Positions 22,158 through 34,214 of a DNA stretch of 64,000 bases are shown piece by piece. A program made the translations under genes and the position numbers. The notes under the pieces were generated by a model. It had not been told where the DNA came from and made no database searches. It was given only the letters and a program-made list of their open reading frames with translations. Every line of letters starts with the position of its first letter. The stretch's first letter is position 1. The stretch comes from Oikopleura dioica (taxonomy: Eukaryota > Animalia > Chordata), in the NCBI GenBank assembly GCA_907165135.1, contig OU015569.1, positions 12,276,001 to 12,340,000 of the forward strand. The letters are read 5' to 3'.

Positions 22158-24842
22158 TTATTCTTCTCGCTTCTCAAATCGCATCATGGAAAATTTCGGA
22201 AAACGCATTGACAAGTCTTCAGCAATGTCCATATTTCCAGCCGTTCTAGGTAACAAAATATAGACCAAGTAAAAGCATTGTTGCAAATTTTGCTTTATTT
22301 TTGCTGAGCTGAGCTGATCTGAGTAGAAATTTCTCTGAGCTGAGATGAGCTGGCCTTATTTTAATGAAGTTGAGCTGAGCTGAGCGGACCCTCATTAGAG
22401 CTGAGCTGAGCTGAGCTCAATGATAATTGTCTGAGCTGAGGTGAGCTGAGCTGGCCTTTTTAAGGAAGTTGAGCTGAGCTGAGCTTAGTGATAATTGTCC
22501 GAGCTGAGCTGAGCAGATCAGCTCATTTTTAAAACTCACTGAGCTGAGCTGAGCGACTGCCCAGCTCACTCAGTTAGCTCAGCTCACGCAGCTCAGCAAA
22601 TTTGCAACTCTGAGCAAAAGTACAAAGATTTCGAACCTGACAAGTCGATATTCTCGAACAATGTTCGTGGCGAAAATAAACTGCTCTTCGATGGCGATTT
22701 GTTTTCCAATGCAGTTCCTCAGTCCAACAGAAAAGCTGCAAACGCGCATGTCGTGAACGTACTCCCCATTCTTGAGAAAGCGATCGGGAATGAACTTGTC
22801 TGGCTGAGGGAAGTTCGCTGGGTTCGCGAAGACAGCAGCCATCGAGGCTAACAATCATTTTCAGAGAATAAAAAGATAAGGAAAGTTAACCGTAAAGCGT
22901 GGATCCTTTCTCAATCAAAACGCCGTCGACGACCATGTCTTCTGAAGCCTGATGCGGGATGTTTTCAGGAGCAGCTGGATTCAATCGCATGTTTTCGAGC
23001 AGAACGGATCTTGTATATGGGCGAAAAGGGTTCAAAAAAGGTAAAAAATTATATTATATTATATTATATTATATTATATTTTATTATATTATTACTAATT
23101 TAGTTATAATAATCAATCAGGAAAAAGTAAAGTTTTCGAACCCCGATGTCAGTTTTCCTTCTTGATATCATTATCTGTCTCCAGCGAATTCATGATTTCT
23201 CGATGCATTTTGTCTTGCACTTCTGGCCGGTCGGAAAGAACTGCGCACAACCAAGTCAAGGTATTCCTTCAAACATCGACTGACAAGTTCATTTTTTCGT
23301 GAATACTCACGCAAGAGTGTCGCTAGCAGCAGCGTAAATGATAAGAGCAGTTCCAGCGACGACGTCGAAGCCCAGCCGCGGCTCATTTTCCGCCTCAATA
23401 AGGATCATATCTTGAAAATAAATAAACATATAAATGGGCCCCTTTTGTTACCTAAAAATCCCTTGGATTGCTCTTGTCGAGCGTTTCTCTGTGCTTGACG
23501 ACGTTTTCGAAGCAGAACTGATTGAACTTCTTGTGCGCTCCGTAGTACTTGTCCAAGGTCGCTTTCCAGATCATTTGGTAAAGAGGATTTTGTGAAATGA
23601 AAAGAGGCAATTTGCCAGCCGCCGTTTTCTTTAAAAGAACCGGAACGATTGTTTCAAACACAATCTTCATTTGCTCTTCTAGCATCTTGAACACTAAATT
23701 TTCGTCAGGACTCGAGAACTTAAGAATTATCACCTGGATCGTCAAAGTCGAAAGTTGTTCCGAAAGCAAAGCCTGTGACTGGGCTCGGCAACCTGTGTAG
23801 AAAGCCTGAGTCAGGGTCTGAAAGAGCTGAAATGAAAAGCCGCGCTAGAATTTTTGATAGATTGTAATGGTAGTATTTTCATTCTGCGCGGCTTTTCATT
23901 TGAGCTCTTTCAGACCCTGACTCAGGTTTTCTACACAGGTTGCCGAGCCCAGGCCTGTGATGACATTCATAGTGCCATTTACGAAAACCGCTTTGGGGTC
24001 GATGCCTTCTTCCGAGCTTCCTTTTGGCCGAGAATGCGATTCACGGACTCGGAGCTCTGCTCGATTATTTCGATGATTCGGTTCCGCCCGGTGAGTTTTT
24101 TCGTCGTTTCGTACCAAATTGTTCGAAACTTTCTGTGGAAGTCATCGTAAGGCCCATCCGCCAGTCCTGAATTGTATCCCGGGCCATTCTTGATCAGCTG
24201 GTCCTCTGCGCCCAGTATTTCCAGAGCCTGTTTGTCCATCTCGTAGTGTTTGACATTCCTTTCCGTGTCGACTTTTATCTTCGCGTTGTAATCTCGATTC
24301 GAAAGCTCCTTTTGCGCGAACGCTTCCTTCATGAAGTCGAAATCCGTGATCATGTAAAAATTGCTTCAAGGCTTAAATTGGTAGACGTTTGTTATGTCCC
24401 AAAATGTCCCCGAATGTCTTGAATGTCCCCAAATGTCCCGAATGTCCTCAAATGTCCCGAATGTCCCCGAATGTCCCGAATGTAGTAAAAAGTCGGGGAC
24501 ATTCGAAACATTCGGGTACATTCGGGACATTTGAGGACATTCGGAGACATTTTGGACATTCGAGGACATAAGAGGGGCGTTCCCTTAAATTTGTGCTCTT
24601 GGCCGATTTTTGGATAACTACTTGCTATAAGCCATTCCTATAAGTCGAAAAGGGATACAGCTCAGGGCGAAAGATTTTTGGCAAATTTCCCTTTTGAAGG
24701 CTTCGGCGAGGTCTTTCGCGTTTTGAGCTTTTTGCAAGGAGAATGGAAAGCTCGGAATCGGGTGAAATTTGTACTTCAGCCAAATTTGCAGCAGTCGCCC
24801 GAAAACGAGGACCAGCAAAGTCAAAAATAGAAACGAAATCAT
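22158..24842 (-). CDS. Cytochrome P450, CYP2-clan-like, multi-exon
   Basis: N-terminal TM anchor; DPKAVFVNGTMNVITG|FAFGTTFDFDDP; PANFPQPDKFIPDRFL (PERF); heme motif FSVGLRNCIG. Confidence 0.92.
22276..22612. mobile_element. hAT-like MITE with (GAGCT)n arms, 8-bp TSD
   Basis: Ends CATTGTTGCAAATTT / AAATTTGCAACTCTG; flanks AGTAAAAG and AGCAAAAG (1 mismatch). Confidence 0.8.
23779..23952. mobile_element. CTGGGCTCGG-family MITE inserted into a P450 exon; forms intron 23773-23954
   Basis: Perfect TSD GCCTGTGA at 23771-23778 and 23953-23960; long perfect TIRs; removing the element plus one TSD restores NVITGFAFG. Confidence 0.92.
24394..24570. repeat. Foldback of 9-10-bp AATGTCCCG units in P450 intron 1
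   Basis: Forward units 24394-24482, then inverted units (ttcgggacat) 24493-24570. Confidence 0.85.
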
Positions 24843-26384
24843 CTTTGCTCTCTTTGCTGAGGTAACCACTTTGAAAGCAGAACCAGTCAGTTGTTTATTT
24901 TAAGGAGCAAGCGACCACCAAAGAACAAATATTTCATTCGCTTTCTCCGACCTTTACATTCTTTCCCGAACGCTGCTGCGTGAACGTTCGCCAAAGAACA
25001 AACATGCTCTTTTTCTCCAGAATTAACTCGTCCGCTTCGCAAAAAGCAACCAAAGTGCAGGCTCAAACAGAGTTGCCATTTCGCTCCCATCAAAAATTAT
25101 GACTACCGTAGTCTACCGTGACCAAAGATGCTACCGCTTTCAAGCTCGGCTCCGCGACAAAGTTTGATCCCCATCAACCCGTGCTTACTGTCAGAAATTT
25201 AGCGGGAGAAGAGAAATTCGAGAGCGAAATTTCCAGCTGAGTGGAGAAACTCGTGGAGAAGCACGAGGAAAAATGAAGTCGGCGAGGTAGAAATTCGAAG
25301 TCGGAATCGAAGAGGTCATATAAATACGCTGCGATCTTCGCATTCTTGTCCGGAAGTCAAAAAATTGTGAATTTGGTTGTTGAATAAGTTGAACTCTTGA
25401 AAACTAGAATAAGAGAGTAAACCGAAATTAAAGAGAGCTCGGACGAAGATGCTGTTTGACGATATTCCTCGATTTAGGCGGACTTTATCCAAATGCAGAG
25501 TTTATCAAAATGGATAAAGTCAAAATTGGATAATCTCCGCAGATGGATAAAGTCCGCCATTTTTTCTTCTAAAATTTTCTAGAACAAAGGATTTTTTCCA
25601 AAAATGGATAAACGCGATCACTTTTTCATTGATAATTCTTAAATAATGCCTTTCAAATCATATAGAACATTATACTCAACACCCCTCACAGCCTAAGAAA
25701 GTTACATATCGTATCGCTGAAGGCTTCTGCTAAGTCATAAGAACTGATCGAAAAAGCGACCTGGTCGGAAACGAGCACCGAACGGCGAGTTGGAAGTTGT
25801 GTACGCCAATTGTGCCCAGATTCACCGAACAACCCGACCATGGATAATTAAAATAAACCTCTTAAAAATCTTGCCATTCAGGGCGAATCTACTGCAACAG
25901 CAGTTATTTGCTTATGATAGTTAAAAATACATAGTTAATACGAACAACCGTCTCTACGAACCAACTGGTTCCTCCTTCAACAACCCAATCAGCTTTCCTG
26001 GCACCCGTTATTCTGATGACTCGACGGAACTTTATAAAAAATATGTATTCTTTGTTATTTATACACAAAAACGCAAATCTTCAACAAATTAAAGTTTTTA
26101 TAAACCAATAAATCACAAAAGCACTTTTTCAAATGAATAGTCAGTGTCATATTTAAAATATGATATTTTTGTAACTTAGTAGTAAACAAGTCAGTGAAAA
26201 TAGTCAGTAAATATAATACTGAAATTTTTTAAAGTGTGCCAAAGAGAGAGACAGGCAAATTCCTCAAGTAAGATTAAACGGGTTAAATATTCTGTAAGTT
26301 TTTGTTAATGTTTTGCCTTTGAAAATACCCCTGAAGGGTGTAAATATACAGTTTTTAGTAAAAGAAATCAGGTGAAATGAATTG

Positions 26385-26424
26385 ATTGGCAAGCTTTCGG
26401 CATTTCGCCATCATCAGGCCACTG
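26385..26424 (-). ncRNA. Minimal type I hammerhead ribozyme motif (inverted copy)
   Basis: Exact reverse complement of 26614-26653. Confidence 0.7.
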
Positions 26425-26613
26425 AATGGTTCAATAGATACAGAAAAAGTAGGGAGGACTTACGGTGAAACAGGACAAGTCCTGAGTGAGTTAGAAATGG
26501 GGGAAGGGTAACCGGCAAAACGAAGTCTAGAGAATTTTATGAAAAGAGTCTAGAGACTTTTTCACACAAATTGTGCGCAGCTGAGCGCAAGAGAGGGAAC
26601 CCAGCGAAGTGGC

Positions 26614-26653
26614 CAGTGGCCTGATGATGGCGAAATGCCGAAAGCTTGCCAAT
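26614..26653 (+). ncRNA. Minimal type I hammerhead ribozyme motif, Penelope-like-element type
   Basis: UGGC (stem I)-CUGAUGA-U-GGCG/AAA/UGCC (stem II)-GAAA-GC-UU (palindromic stem III AAGCUU)-GCCA (stem I), followed by AATAAA. Confidence 0.75.
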
Positions 26654-26858
26654 AAATTATTACGAAAACAACATTATGAAACGTCAACTTCAATTACGAA
26701 ATGAATTGAGTTCGTGTTTGAAAAATACGTTTATTTTTTCGGGTTCTTCTTCCTATTAAGGCGTTTCAGCGCTCTTTTTCATTACCTCTGTAACGTTCAA
26801 CAGCGTCTAAAATTTGTCCTTCTTCAAACCCCATCTAAATCGCATAATTAAAGAATAA

Positions 26859-29800
26859 TTACTTATTTTTATTGATATTGAAATTTACCGCTTTTGAATT
26901 TTGGATTGCAGTTGCTATCGCAGGCTTGTGACTCAAAGTGATTGAATATGCCTGAGGAAGAAGATGCCATTTTCCTTTCTTCAAGTTGAATTTCTCATGA
27001 ACCAAATTAATGATTTCGTTGTTGGCTCCTTTATAAACGTAATTGCTGCTGGAGAGTTTGAACATCATATTTATATCACTCGCGTAGTATGGCCGGTCGA
27101 GCGGAATTCTGAGTTGATTGCCATGTACCCTACCCTGATGTTTGATGAGAGTATTCTGGAGAACGTATTCGCGGTTTTCGACTCGGTCAAGCACCATTTG
27201 GTGCATTAAAAACTACCGTCATCGTTTTGATACACGCCGGTAACAGTCAGCGGACGGTCTAATTTGAAATTTTCGTGAAGGAGCACTTATCAATGAAAAG
27301 TTCTGGAAAATGAGTGATAATGTAACTTTACCTTGTTTAAAATCGAAATCAGCTTTTGAGTTTTTCCCTTTGTCGATCATCTCCCATCCAGTGGGATGAA
27401 AATAAGTTTTGAACTTGAGTCTTTTGAGAAGCGTTTCGATTTCAGTGTGTTGAAAAGACTGTTCTTCTTCTTTGGGGTTGAGAGTTAATCCGGCCAAGCT
27501 GCGGGGATAAACAATCATTGTGATTGTTGTCAAAACTCTTTCCATCGAGAAAAATATTGCCATTTTATTATCGTCTATACTAGGGTCGGACACAAAAAAT
27601 TTTTGAAAGCCGCAAAAGGGAAATATATATGAATCGAAAGAGCAGAAGCTAGCGATTCGAATGATATATGTCTCGATGCCGTGAGAGTTGGGAATATTTT
27701 TTAAATAATTTTTAAAGTTTCAAAAAACGTGATAATTATACGGGATTCAAGAATTTCAACTTTTGTTCTAGGCGTGCTATGATTACGATCGATAGCTTTT
27801 CTTGAAGCTCAGTAATCACTGAATTCATCGAGGTGATATTTTTGGAACCAGCTGGTCATTCTGGTGGTTCGTCGCGGTTCAAACCTTTGGATGGATTGAG
27901 ATCCGGCAATATGCATATCAAAATGCATATTTTTTGATAAGAAGTAGTTCCAACAGATTTTCAAACAAAACCACTTCGTTGACCGACCGGTTCACAGCGG
28001 TTCAAAACGGTTCACGCTCCGAGTATTCACAAAATATTGAAATATGTATATCAAAATGCTTCTCTACTAAAAAGGAGTTTTTCAAACTGATTTTCGAACA
28101 GAACCACTTGGCTAACCGCCCGGTTCACAGTGGTTCAAAGCGGTTCACGGTCTGAATACCCACAAAATATTGTAATATGTATATCAAAATGCCTATCTAC
28201 TCAAGAGGACTCTAAAACTTACTTTCGAACAGAACCACTTGGCTTACCGCCCGGTTCACAGCGGTTCACGGTCTGAATATTCACAGAATATTGAAAGATG
28301 TATATGAAAATGCTGTTCTACTCAAGAGGAGTCTTTTAAACTGATTAACGAACCAAACCACTTGGCTAACCGCCCGGTTCAGAGCGGTTCAGAGTGGTTC
28401 ACGCTCTTAGTATTCACAAAATGCTGAGATATAAATATCAAAATGTATCTCTAGCTTAAGAAGTCATTTTAACAGATATTCGAACCAAACTACTTGGCTA
28501 AATGACTGGTTCGTCGTGGTTCAAGACAGTTCATCTTCTTTTTACAGTCCCATTCATAAAATTGAGTCTGCGACGGGGCGAAGCCGATCCGAAGGTGAGG
28601 CCAGTCTCGTTTATTCAATTGAGTCGGTGGCGGGGCGAAGCCGACCCGAAGGAGAAGCCAGTCTCGTTTATTCAACTGAGTTTGCGACGGGGCCAAGCCG
28701 ACCCGAAGGGAGGCCAGTCTCGTTTATTCAATTGAGTCCGTGACGGGGCGAAGCCGACCCGAAGGGAGGCCAGTCTTGTTTATTCAATTGAGTCTGTGAC
28801 GGGGCGAAGCCGACCGGAAGGGAGGCCAGTCTCGTTTATTCAATTCAGTTTGCGACGGGGCGAAGCCGACCCGAAGGGAAGCCAGTCTCGTTTATTCAAT
28901 TGAGTTTGCGACGGGGCGAAGCCGATCCGAAGAGGAGGCCAGTCTCGTTTATTCGCAGACTTAATTGAATAAACTGGACTGGCCATTCGGATCGACCTGG
29001 CCCCGTCCCAGACTGAATTAAATAAACGGAACCGGCCTCCCCTTCGGGTCGGCTTGGCCCCGTCGCAAACTCAATTGAATAAACGAGACTGGCCTCCCTT
29101 CGGGTCGGCTTCGCCCCGTCGCAAACTGAATTGAATGAACGAGACTGGCCTCCCTTCGGGTCGGCTTCGCCCTGTCACAGACTCAATTGAATAAACGAGA
29201 CTGGCCTCCCCTTCGAGTCGGCTTCGCCCCGTCGCAGACTCAATTAAATAAACGAGACTTTCCTTCCCTACGGGTTAGGGTTATATTTCAGCATTTTATT
29301 GATACTAAGAGCGTGAACCGCTTTGAACCACTGTGAACCGGGCGGTTAGCCAAGTGTTCGGAAATCAGTTTGAAAGACTCTTTTTAGTAGAGAAGCATTT
29401 TGATATACATATTTCAATATTTTGTGAATACTCGGAGCGTGAACCGTTTTGAACCGCTGTGAACCGGTCGGTCAACGAAGTGGTTTTGTTTGAAAATCTG
29501 TTGGAACTACTTCTTATCAAAAAATATGCATTTTGATATACATATTGCCGGATCTCAATCCATCCAAAGGTTTGGACCGCGACGAACCACCAGAATGACC
29601 AGCTGGTTCCAAAAATATCACCTCGATGAATTCAGTGATTACTTAGCTTCAAGAAAAGCTATCGATCGTAATCATAGCACGCCTAGAACAAAAGTTCAAA
29701 TTCTTGAATTCTCGTATCTGGTAGTTTCAGTCAACTTCGAGGCGCTAGAAAATCTCAGAGGATACCCAGATCATTTATTTTCCCAGTTATGAGAAGAAAA

Positions 29801-32305
29801 CGCTTTGAAAGCTCCAATATAAGCCATTGACCATGTTTCTAGCACCTATAAACCAGAAATAATTCTTGGAGATTCCTTTTAAAAACGTGAAATTTTCCAT
29901 ATTTGTCCTGTTCGGACATAAGAAAAAATTTTTTAAAAATATTCCCAATAGCTATGCATAAAATTTTTATTGAGGATAAAAGCCAAGTGTCTGTTACATA
30001 TAAACACCCATTATTGAGATTGCGGCTATTAGATTTTTTGAGATAAGGCTGTTTTAATATAGCTATTTAAAGAAAAATATGTCACTTGAAAAGTAAAAGG
30101 CGTCGCAACTGTCCTTATTTTTCATTTTTGCCTCTGAAATTTGTCTCGCATATATTTTGAACCCTTTACTGCAAATAACAAAGAGAAAATAGCTCATCAG
30201 CATTCATTATATATTGAATTCGATTTTTTAAAGCTTTTTAGCCAAAAAATAGCCATTTTTAGGGCTTTTAGCCTCTCTAATCCAACGTTCACCACCAATG
30301 GTGCTAAATTTTTGTGGGTGGGGGTTTTTGACCATGCTGAATTCGGTACTGATGAGAAAAAAGGATTTGAGAACTTTTTTCTGTGTCCGACCCTAGTCTA
30401 TACCCAAGTCATTTTGGAGTGCCCATCTGAGAAGAGTACTGACTGAAATTGGGACACAAAGATTCGTGTCTTTTTGGTCGACAATATTCTGCGTCAGATT
30501 TTCAAAGTCTTGGTTCATTTGCTTCGTGTATTGTCCCTTCCAATTCGCCAGGACTTTCGATTTCGTTAGATTTGAATCGAGAGCGAAATCAAATTTTGAG
30601 TTTTTCAAGGAAATGATTTTTGAAACGCTTTTGATTTCTTCGATTGACGGTTTTTTTGAAGAGAGCCATTCCGCCTTGCTAGACTAAAATAATAAGATTA
30701 AAAATATTATACAAGTCAATTCTTCGTTTTTATCAAAAAATTGTACCTTCAGCTCGTTTTCGATTTCTAATCTATCTTCATCCGTTTCCATTGGCATAAA
30801 CAAAAGACTCCACGCGGTTTTCCAGTCACAAAGGGTCCAAATGTGGACTGGAAACTCAGGACTTCCACCACTATTTGCGGTACTGTCCAACTGCTGAATT
30901 TGCGTAAAAGCCGCTGTACCAGCCCCTAAAGAAATTGGAGGGTTATAATGTTTTCATGTTCAGAAAAATAAACTAACCAATGAAACTGGCAAGAACAAAT
31001 TTGTCGCCTCTCCTTCTATAACCCATTTGTCGAAATCTCTCGCTTTTTGATCCTTCGATGATGCCGAAATCTGTCCACACGGGTACAATACCAGAGTTTC
31101 CCTTTTTCAGGAGAACGTTCTCCGGTTTTGCATCAAGATGTTTGATCCCTACGGCTCGCAAATATTCTAATCCCTCCATGACTCCTTTTGCTATTTCTTT
31201 TCTCTCTTCTAATTCCAACTTGTTTCCTCTAAGCAGTGTTCTCAAATCACCATCACACTTCTCCATGACTGTGATCCAGCCAAGACAGTCCTGTTTCTTG
31301 CTATCTTCTTTCAAAAAATCTCAATATTTGAGAAATTTTTTATCACATTTTGATGAAACGGGATCGCACTGTCGTGTCCATCGTGTCGATAAGTCGGCTT
31401 TGCAACTTCGCAATCTGAATTTTTATTTTTCTAGCTTCGAAGTTCAATTATTTAAGGACCCCCGTCAGCGAAAAATGAAAATTTTCAAAAATGCCGTATT
31501 TTTTGTTCTGAATGCGACTGGAAATAAGATTTAGTATAAAATCTTGACCTGAGCAAGTTTTGACCAATAAAACTCGAAAATTTTACCAAAAATTTCAAAC
31601 GTCATTTTTCGACGAAAAGTCGAATTTTCAAACGCGATTTTGAGGGTGTTAGAGTCGAGATAGACCCCAAAAAATCATGCCTCAAAATCGTTTTTTGACC
31701 TGTAGAATCCATTTCCGGGGTCAAAATTTTGAAATTCCGAAAATTGATTTTTCGAGGGGGGTCCTTAAATTACCTGCTGAAAGATGAATTTCAAAATGGA
31801 GCTCATCCGAGTTCTTAATTAATCGCTGAGTATTCGAAGCTGCTGGAAACTCCTCCGTAAAAAGGGCCGGGTCGAAACATTGGACTCGAACGGCGACATC
31901 CAACTTCCCAAAAGTCTCGTTTAAAATTATTGCTTCTCCGCCAGCTGAAATTTTTTTCTTCTCCAATGTTGGATCAAGAATCCATTCTCCCTCTTCTCTT
32001 TTTAACTTAGATCGCTCAAGCTTTTTTCCTCCAAAATCTGGATTTCGCTCAAGAATTTTCTCTTGTAACTTGGTGATAATCCACTTTTCTTTAAAGGAAT
32101 CATGTTTGCCTTCTCCATCGTCAAAAGTAACCTCGTCCCATCGACCACGTGGATACTCTTGAAACTCCATTCTCTCGACGGACAAGATAAGTCTGTCCGA
32201 ATCGTCCCTCGTTGTTTTTCTCTTCAAAAGCATATGAAAACCGTCAAGCCAGTTCTTAATGACTTCTCTCGTCAATTCTTTTGGATGCCCCGTTACTTTT
32301 GTCAT
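26859..32305 (-). CDS. Atypical protein kinase fused to a papain-like peptidase domain; interrupted by a 2.8-kb element and two homopolymer frameshifts (possibly a pseudogene)
   Basis: Kinase motifs ISAGGEAII, VAVRV, HQNVIKN, WITVMEKCDGDL, HLDAKPENVLL, TDFG, GT; then NIVDQKDTNLCVPIS ... MHQMVLDRVENREYVLQNT. Confidence 0.75.
27581..30395. mobile_element. Non-autonomous hAT-like element (2815 bp) with an internal foldback structure
   Basis: TIR TAGGGTCGGACAC / GTGTCCGACCCTA; perfect 8-bp TSD GTCTATAC (27573-27580, 30396-30403); no transposase ORF; ~27770-28080 is inverted at ~29380-29700. Confidence 0.92.
28560..29270. repeat. Two opposed tandem arrays of a 56-57-bp unit (about 7 forward and 5 reverse copies)
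   Basis: Unit GAGTCTGCGACGGGGCGAAGCCGACCCGAAGGGAGGCCAGTCTCGTTTATTCAATT; orientation flips near 28955. Confidence 0.95.
31456..31764. mobile_element. TTAA-flanked MITE (GGACCCCC...GGGGGTCC) in a kinase intron; related copy at ~40937-41245
   Basis: TTAA at 31452-31455 and 31765-31768; internal sequence shared with the 40.9-41.2 kb copy. Confidence 0.8.
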
Positions 32306-33273
32306 TTTCGAAAATTTAAATTTTCTTACAATTTAACTTTTATGAGAGCTAACTCTACTGAATAATGCGTTGCGGAGTTATAGTCGTTTTACCGGGTCAG
32401 ATGAGAATCCGTGCGCTGCGTCGTTAAAAAGTAGTTAAAAAGTCATGGGAAACCTACATAGTATTCATCTGCGAAATATCTAATGATTAACGTCTGCTTC
32501 CTGTCATCAATTCGGATTAGCGTAAAATGAAAATTCTCAATAATAAAACGACATTCCACAAGAACGTGCTACTTGGTCAATTTTGCAACTGGAGCGAATT
32601 GTGTTTATTCTTATAGTTCGTTTCGTTCAATAAAATTCTAGTTCTCAGTTTTAAACTGTTTTAAAATGAAGCCTTTTTTAAAATGAGGCCATATCAGTTT
32701 ATGAACATACCGATTCCGCAAATTATTTTCTGAAGTAATTTATTTCTCACGAAACAAATTTTTGGGCTATTATTTAGCTGTAAAATGGAGGCGCGCAATC
32801 ACTTTGAAGGGACTAGTGCCCGGCGCCGGAGCCACTTTCCGCCCAGAGCAAGAGTTCGAAAAGTCCGCGAAATTTCCTCTCGGCCTTGCGCCCGAGCGCC
32901 CTCACCCGCTTGCAGTCAGTCCGAATGAAATCGCGGTACAAAAGGCAAGTCGCTTTTGATAGCAAGGAAGAGTCAAATCTATGGCCATGATCAATCGAAC
33001 GTTCAGACTCTTCTTCGCTTCCTGAAGAAGCAAAATAGATAACTCCTCGAACGTCACTGTCAAAAACTGGAATACACATCAAAATTAATTACGTCTCGAT
33101 TTATTTTTTGTTTTTGTAAAATGCAGCGCTCCTTCTGTCAGAGAAAAAGTTAAAATTTTGTGAATTGAGCCAAAAATTGTGGAGTTAAAAATTTTGCGAA
33201 TAAATTTGTCATGAAAGAAAAAAGTTCGCGACGTTTCGTCGACATTTTCTATTTTCGCCTTGTTTAGATTCTT

Positions 33274-33881
33274 TTAGATGAGCATATTCTGGTACATCTG
33301 GAAGAGCTGGTCGGGATGCATACTTTGCGCGCGTTTTTCGTGCACCTTAATTCAATTTTACGCTTCTTCAGACTTTTCTCAAAAATTAACAGAGAGACAC
33401 CCTTATTTTCCTTGACAAAAGGAAACTCAAAAATGGACAATTTTAAAAATTTTGTCCAACAGCTTCATTTTTCGCTAAAATGGCCATTTTTATAATCATT
33501 TTTATGAATATAATTGATTTTGAGAAGGGTATACCCTTAATGTTTGTGAAAAAAGAGCAAAACAAAGATTTTCTCAAAAAATGCAAAATTTCAATTTAAC
33601 AACCCAAAAGGCAAGAAATATCTAAAATTTTAGATATATATTTTTAGATATAGGGGGTCCTTAAGAATCTGTTGTCAAATGTAAGATACTGTACCTTGCT
33701 CCGGAAGCCTTGGAACTCAGAGGGTACCTTTTGGAAATAAACCGGTTGTGCCATGTACTCGTCTAAAAGCTCTTCCAGTGGATCGGCTACAGTAACGAAT
33801 TATCAATGGATACAGTAACAATTTACCTTTTGCGAGAAGAGGCATCGCTGCTATGGCCAAGAGGGAAAAGAAATTTCTCAT
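33274..33881 (-). CDS. 72-aa secreted prepropeptide-like protein, 3 exons (33881-33827, 33786-33695, 33345-33274)
   Basis: MRNFFSLLAIAAMPLLAKA-DPLEELLDEYMAQPVYFQKVPSEFQGFRSK|VHEKR-AQSMHPDQLFQMYQNMLI*; canonical GT-AG introns (40 and 349 nt) with matching phases; gene-like codon usage. Confidence 0.7.
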
Positions 33882-34214
33882 CAAAAATGTGAAAAAATTT
33901 TATCTTTTTTAAAAAGTGAGATTCGCAAAAGTTGTCCAGCTTAAGTATTGCCGCATAAATAATTAATTCGGTTGAGCAACAGTAAGCTGCCCACCGGATG
34001 GCGTCCGTTGTCGTCCGCTAAAAATAAATAAAAACTAAGAGTAAGCGATCGCCGCCGATTTTTATTGATAATTGGGAGAAATGGAATGGATTCTCAAAAG
34101 AAAATTAAGATTTTATTCCCATCGAGGAGTTAATTTAAATGACTAAATTTTATTACAAGTTTTTTATTAAAAATTTAACGTAGAAACCCCTTAATTTTTC
34201 GCTTCTGATCAATC

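Follow-up and report, generated by a model that had tools for sequence, protein, structure and literature searches.

The gene at positions 26859 to 32305 of a 64,000-nucleotide stretch of Oikopleura dioica DNA (assembly GCA_907165135.1, contig OU015569.1, positions 12,276,001 to 12,340,000 of the forward strand; hereafter the window) raises the question of whether an animal can carry a protein kinase and a papain-like cysteine peptidase on one polypeptide, and whether the copy in the window is still able to encode it. A first-pass annotation, made from the letters alone, had described such a fusion in a spliced open reading frame (ORF) and had taken it for a lineage-specific signalling or defence module. 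The best explanation overall is that the locus is a disrupted member of a large appendicularian family of kinase-papain-like peptidase proteins (probability about 0.75). The interest rests in the family and not in the window copy.

More than 50 O. dioica gene models, together with many marine-metagenome ORFs, carry an N-terminal domain, a divergent kinase, a linker and a C-terminal domain. The proteins are about 700 amino acids long, and their four parts are a folded N-terminal domain of about 125 residues, a kinase fold, a linker of about 60 residues with a conserved LDDxNLTKS motif, and a C-terminal papain-like peptidase domain of about 240 residues; an LDDxNLTKS/NLTKN pair stands in a disordered stretch just before the peptidase domain. 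Every kinase and peptidase motif is held by six O. dioica models of 692-707 amino acids. One relative (P0128) is a single unbroken ORF of 398 amino acids that runs from HHDLKPEN and DFG through QKDSQLCVP and YPRS, so that the kinase and peptidase domains lie in one reading frame. All of the window exons are found in the same order at three O. dioica loci, and at locus L003 (OKI2018_I69 chr1, OU015566.1; L003:4236-6621) the splicing of four GT-AG introns yields an intact ORF of 712 amino acids. The combination of a kinase and a papain-like peptidase on one protein is supported as a real architecture. Where the first-pass annotation had proposed a count of intact paralogues, the six full-length models with all motifs and the L003 gene supply them, within appendicularians only; the window copy itself is broken. 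Contigs are shared by several of the paralogues. At L004:6001-6992 (FN653188.1; P0005, E4XUR1) the last exon is duplicated in tandem, and the His motif of the second copy reads FYKM in place of FHQM.

Members of the family are already present in UniProt and NCBI as unnamed predicted proteins. The public annotation of L003 is a C-terminal fragment of 174 amino acids only, and L002 and L004 are similarly under-annotated, so that many members seem to be cut short or absent in the public annotation of O. dioica. A search with the last exon of the window gene against 1.84 billion representative proteins returned 51 relatives, and those looked up were either proteins of O. dioica or unnamed ENA-assembly ORFs. 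With P0018, a single ORF of 338 amino acids that holds the whole C-terminal domain, 40 relatives were found, and with P0079, 53; all were from O. dioica or metagenomes. Throughout all searches the family was found only in O. dioica and in marine-plankton metagenomes and, as far as these sequences indicate, it appears to be confined to appendicularians. No paper on the Oikopleura family was found in a literature search.

The assignment of the C-terminal domain had been based on a Gln six residues before a Cys and on a His and an Asn 16 residues apart, the spacings of papain. The codons are confirmed: on the minus strand, Gln is encoded at 30474-30476 and Cys at 30456-30458 in the 5' part of exon 4 (NIVDQKDTNLCVPIS), and exon 5 encodes His at 27201-27203 and Asn at 27153-27155, at a spacing of 16 residues. 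These residues are kept in the homologues. An alignment of 74 sequences gave Gln in 31 of 34, Cys in 33 of 34, His in 52 of 59 and Asn in 59 of 64, and a full-length alignment of 76 sequences gave 52/54, 51/52, 45/49 and 42/45 for the same four positions. Conservation of this kind across about 75 homologues places the motifs far beyond chance, and the four putative catalytic residues are retained in 88-98% of members. The segment QKxSNLCVP is nearly invariant throughout the family.

A papain fold had been expected for this domain, and the predicted structure bears this out. An AlphaFold model of residues 155-451 of P0057 (predicted local distance difference test, pLDDT, 80.5; predicted template modelling score, pTM, 0.73) has Cys68 as the first residue of a helix (68-85), His207 in a strand (203-215) and Asn223 just past the next strand. 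Papain (1ppn, residues 18-212) aligns with residues 61-295 of the model, with C25 matched by the Cys and Q19 by the Gln. Foldseek by itself gave weak matches for the peptidase domain; in a separate structure search without Foldseek, against 48,161 representative chains, the best 50 rows were all papain-like. Neighbours of the domain in the ESM Atlas and AFDB belong to C39, C39_2 and C1. At the level of sequence, no match to PF00112, PF03412 or PF13529 was obtained by hmmscan for the window pieces and seven homologues at E-values up to 1-10, and a PDB sequence search with the C-terminal pieces and the family profile gave no useful match. A match of the C-terminal pieces to DUF6937 (E 0.03-0.14) fell below threshold and was dropped. 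The predicted two-lobed fold of alpha and beta structure is that of the papain-like peptidases of clan CA, and the domain, which matches no curated family, is a new family within that clan and belongs to neither C1 nor C39.

The two nearest known families differ from it in several respects. The similarity to the C39 and C39_2 peptidases (ComA, PCAT1; PF03412, PF13529), which are among the nearest structures, is structural only; these are bacterial, bacteriocin-processing domains of ABC transporters, whereas the Oikopleura domain is found in an animal, is fused to a kinase and is larger by about 100 residues, with an extra helical half that bears an invariant YPRSxAGLNLNP loop. The C1 peptidases (papain, cathepsins, ervatamin, xylellain; PF00112) are likewise among the nearest structures, at 8-16% identity. 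In contrast to them, the Oikopleura protein is multidomain and apparently cytoplasmic, and no signal peptide, pro-region or NSW motif was seen in it.

The kinase part of the window gene is recognized by the Pfam Pkinase profile in exon 2 (E 7e-11, 42.4 bits, cut-off 31.7), and P0079 scores 43.2 bits. The match spans only positions 75-160 of the 263 profile positions, from hinge to DFG. The full-length AlphaFold model of P0097 (pLDDT 83.3, pTM 0.84) suggests by its pTM a rigid multi-domain body, and its kinase part matches many kinase families (E about 1e-7, probability 1.0, 12-17% identity); GSK3, CDK, MAPK, CaMKII and MAP3K are among the neighbours, with no clear nearest family. Between beta-3 (149-157) and beta-4 (205-213) this model has strands and a 3-residue helix only, with no ordinary alpha-C helix, which is a matter of prediction. 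The description of the kinase domain as complete therefore stands in part: a kinase fold with a Pfam score above the cut-off is present, but the profile is covered from hinge to DFG only and the canonical alpha-C helix is absent from the model.

The unusual residues reported for the window copy were confirmed, namely SAGGEA at 31931-31948 and VAVR at 31886-31897 in exon 1, with an intact HLDAKPEN at 31117-31140 and DFG at 31063-31071 in exon 2, and the first two are features of the whole family. Arg takes the place of the VAIK Lys at beta-3 in 43 of 44 members, and the Gly loop is S-E/A-G-G-E-A (SEGGEA, with SAGGEA in the window), not GxGxxG. In the homologue alignment the catalytic Asp, Lys and Asn are each present in 48 of 48 sequences and the Asp of DFG in 47 of 47. 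The predicted structure and these residues describe a very divergent eukaryotic protein-kinase fold with a remodelled N-lobe.

The spliced ORF of the first-pass annotation proved not to be clean, and its large gap of 2.8 kb, which had been read as an intron, is a transposon within exon 4. The element occupies 27581-30395 (2815 bp) and is bounded by terminal inverted repeats TAGGGTCGGACACA, a sequence that occurs in the window exactly twice against an expectation by chance of about zero. An 8-bp target-site duplication, GTCTATAC, is present as direct copies at 27573-27580 and 30396-30403. Without the element and with a single copy of the duplication, exon 4 reads ...LQNDLGIDDNKMAIFF... in frame. 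An empty site is found in L005, a marine-metagenome contig, which joins both flanks with a single copy of the site and leaves the exon uninterrupted; its DNA identity to the window flanks (31017-30397 and 27580-26799) is 90%. The O. dioica paralogues are likewise continuous across the site.

The interior of the element (27745-29709) contains an inverted repeat of 330 nucleotides at 99% identity (27745-28074 and 29380-29709), 133-bp tandem repeats at 27908-28501, and opposed arrays of a 56-bp repeat at 28560-28954 and 28953-29275. Such an interior would form a very large hairpin. It holds no long ORF and no transposase ORF, only short repeat-derived ORFs, which were not searched against transposase profiles; lacking a transposase ORF, the element would be non-autonomous if it belongs to hAT. 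The 8-bp duplication, the TAGGG terminus and the empty site in a relative fit a non-autonomous hAT-like element. It resembles the non-autonomous members of the hAT superfamily in its 8-bp target-site duplication, its short terminal inverted repeats of the YARNG type starting with TAGGG and the lack of a transposase ORF, and differs from them in its interior, where 56-bp and 133-bp tandem repeats form inverted arrays. Read on the coding strand, the target site is GTATAGAC, which starts with GT and includes AG; the insertion therefore makes a possible donor and acceptor, and in-frame removal of the element by this route would cost two codons. For annotation in general, a large apparent intron can be a transposon carried by an exon, and a duplicated target site can mimic splice signals.

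Two frameshifts of one nucleotide each add to the damage. In exon 5 a T5 run (27208-27212) is one base short, and the His motif no longer shares a frame with the preceding ...VTGVYQNDDGSF (...RPLTVTGVYQNDDGSF). Across this site L005, P0001 and P0052 have an unbroken YQNDDGSFLMHQM, which in L005 is DDGSFLMHQM. The other lesion is in exon 2, part of which had been missed. Comparison with O. dioica loci places the start of the exon at 31414, and starts at 31307 or 31319 were rejected; the exon then includes IPFHQNVIKNFSNIEIF (encoding DCEVAKPTYRHDGHDSAIPFHQNVIKNFSNIEIF), which is split from LKEDSKKQDCLGW (LKEDSKKQDCLGWITVMEK) by a T6 run (31313-31318) that is one base short. Locus L002 of O. dioica reads continuously across this site as NIEIFLKTDKKMQDCLGW. 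Apart from the transposon and the two frameshifts, the exons of the window copy are open. Against L005 the window copy has a ratio of nonsynonymous to synonymous substitution rates (dN/dS) of 0.73 (dS 0.097, 371 codons), which indicates weak constraint. Exact look-ups of its own ORFs in public assemblies found none, and a protein search for near relatives found none closer than 82% amino-acid identity.

RNA reads from four runs with the same species label, three of them bulk oligo-dT and one single-cell, were mapped to 26700-32400 and gave just 6 partial reads, at 90-95% identity and with no splice joints; as these runs lack a positive control for the organism, the result speaks only weakly for silence. 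Three reads of the RNA run X5 match about 31 nucleotides over the Cys motif (30433-30464) with unrelated sequence on both sides, and may be transcripts of an expressed paralogue.

Some of these observations weigh against the reading of the locus as a disrupted member of a kinase-peptidase family. Both frameshifts lie in homopolymers and could be assembly errors, and the sequences for comparison reach at most 82% amino-acid identity; the RNA null comes from the uncontrolled runs just mentioned; the Gln of the peptidase domain falls in a low-confidence stretch (pLDDT <50) of both models; and a beta-3 Arg with a missing alpha-C helix is typical of pseudokinases. A functional window copy would follow if the homopolymer lesions, each a single-base deficit in an otherwise open set of exons, were errors of assembly and if the transposon were spliced out through the GT and AG of its own target-site duplication, GTATAG(AC). 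The duplication puts G/GTATAG at the 5' junction and GTATAG/AC at the 3' junction, and splicing there is in frame; two codons would be lost (...NDL/DDNK...), and the product would join ...CAAAATGACTTGG to ACGATAAT.... The donor GTATAG is weak, however, no reads of the three bulk RNA runs could be placed on the gene, the dN/dS to the nearest relative is 0.73, and three independent lesions in a single gene are the usual appearance of a pseudogene. A working copy is accordingly unlikely, and a recent pseudogene is the likeliest reading of the window copy.

The remaining alternatives concern the domains of the family. It is extremely improbable that the Gln/Cys and His/Asn spacings are accidental and that the C-terminal region is not papain-like at all: the region lacks a Pfam or PDB sequence match, yet the residues are conserved in about 45-55 homologues and the best 50 structural matches among the 48,161 chains are all papain-like. 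A papain fold that is no ordinary protease is a less remote prospect, and we regard it as a credible minority view; the domain would then strip ubiquitin-like modifiers, as do UfSP, ATG4 and ZUFSP, or act as an acyl or amide transferase in the manner of BtrH and phytochelatin synthase, or cut its own linker only. UfSP, ATG4A, ZUFSP, viral tegument deubiquitinases, BtrH_N and phytochelatin synthase are indeed among the structural neighbours beside C1 and C39, the protein looks cytoplasmic, with neither signal peptide nor pro-region, and the disordered linker directly before the domain carries the conserved LDDxNLTKS/NLTKN pair. Taken over the conserved residues, catalytic activity of the peptidase as such is reasonably probable. 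The kinase-like domain is an active kinase of an unusual kind, or else a pseudokinase that binds nucleotide. As a pseudokinase it would serve as a scaffold, either nucleotide-binding or purely structural, that positions the peptidase or controls it allosterically, with no phosphotransfer. The beta-3 Arg and the SEGGEA loop, the strands modelled in place of the alpha-C helix and the restriction of the Pfam match to the hinge-to-DFG segment all favour a pseudokinase, and there is a precedent in mammalian KSR, which has Arg at the beta-3 Lys position and is regarded as a pseudokinase. KSR and other pseudokinases or low-activity kinases without the beta-3 Lys resemble the Oikopleura domain in the Arg at the VAIK position and in the retained catalytic loop and DFG, but beyond the kinase fold they have no sequence relationship to it. 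The invariance of the catalytic Asp, Lys and Asn and of the DFG Asp (47-48 of 47-48) is, on the other hand, unusual for a dead kinase. The pseudokinase is a serious contender. Catalytic-loop invariance favours some chemistry and the beta-3 Arg and remodelled N-lobe argue against it, so that transfer of phosphate, beyond nucleotide binding alone, has about an even chance as judged from the residues.

A precedent for the fusion exists outside animals. The EDR1 domain is a papain-like domain fused to a Raf-like kinase in plants and protists (PMC10318531). The EDR1/CTR1-type Raf-like kinases (PF14381) are similar to the Oikopleura family in having papain-superfamily and protein-kinase domains in one polypeptide, and differ in the order of the two, the EDR1 domain being N-terminal. 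Within the superfamily the EDR1 domain also sits on a different branch, close to C71/C93 and the transglutaminases, and a Pfam scan of the Oikopleura homologues gave no match to PF14381. The earlier statement that no characterised animal protein has this architecture holds insofar as no paper on the family was found, the EDR1 kinases being a precedent outside animals. Both superfamilies are well known; a fusion in which both catalytic centres are conserved has not been described in an animal.

We infer from the alignments that both active sites are under purifying selection, and the intact members are, on that ground, probably bifunctional enzymes. In the mechanism proposed here, a kinase-like module that depends on nucleotide and a thiol peptidase would be joined rigidly and act as one unit. 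The coupling might run through the LDDxNLTKS/NLTKN motif in the disordered linker, or through the YPRSxAGLNLNP loop, which is invariant and poorly modelled and might serve as a regulatory, docking or self-cleavage site. That the state of the kinase gates the peptidase, as the first-pass annotation had it, is conjecture. The size of the family, the clustering on contigs, fast evolution, restriction to a single lineage and decay into pseudogenes suggest a role in defence or genetic conflict, for which a preference over housekeeping is tentative and rather doubtful. A still bolder proposal, and quite an improbable one, is an innate-defence or conflict system invented by appendicularians, in which the remodelled nucleotide-dependent kinase would sense a signal and switch on the attached peptidase to cut host or invader proteins, perhaps by way of the LDDxNLTKS linker or the YPRSxAGLNLNP loop; if this were true, the duplication, divergence and loss of members, including the transposon-hit window copy, would reflect an arms race.

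The family numbers over 50 gene models, of which the public annotation cuts short or omits many, and is among the larger lineage-specific expansions of Oikopleura. In a model chordate whose genome is as pared down as that of Oikopleura, such an expansion is a promising candidate for biology particular to the lineage, for instance in defence, conflict or reproduction. The family also provides a natural test case for the working of a kinase with a beta-3 Arg and a remodelled N-lobe, and for whether such a kinase controls a neighbouring protease.

The window copy runs on the minus strand, from the ATG at 32305 to the stop codon TAA at 26859-26861. Exon 1 (31774-32305) codes for the N-terminal domain and the first part of the kinase N-lobe, ends in the donor cag/gtaatt and is 39-44% identical to O. 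dioica paralogues. Exon 2 (30978-31414) encodes the kinase core, with IPFHQNVI... and the hinge GWITVMEK besides the catalytic motifs, and exon 3 (30747-30925) the kinase C-lobe (GTAAFTQ..., CDWKTAWSL), with introns of 52 and 63 nucleotides on its sides. The 5' part of exon 4 (30396-30683) carries the linker (DSNLTKS) and the beginning of the peptidase domain, and its last bases are the first copy of the target-site duplication (30396-30403). The 3' part of exon 4 (27332-27580), on the other side of the transposon, encodes the peptidase domain's helical half, in which the invariant YPRSLAGL(T/N)LNP loop and GWEMI are found. Intron 4 (27286-27331, 46 nucleotides, gtaaag...gataag) has the same position as an intron in the spliced L003 gene, and exon 5 (26859-27285) encodes the beta-sheet half of the domain, with WHLLPQAYS, and the stop codon. 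No paralogue of the gene was found in the window by tblastn, and an Rfam scan of 25000-34000 gave no match.

Elsewhere in the window, exons of a P450 gene are present on the minus strand at 22580-24365. The stretch at 23174-23404, where the I-helix is expected, is not P450-like in any open frame, and the gene may be damaged or the exon reading wrong; the heme-binding segment FSVGLRNCIGK lies at about 22700. Intron 1 of the kinase-peptidase gene (31415-31773, 359 nucleotides) consists mostly of a miniature inverted-repeat transposable element (MITE) of about 320 bp that spans roughly 31450-31770 and has ATTTAAGGACCCCC as its terminal inverted repeats, and about 40-46 nucleotides of the intron are left when it is subtracted. 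The MITE terminus ATTTAAGGACCCCC recurs in the window at 33653, 40935 (with one mismatch) and 57424.

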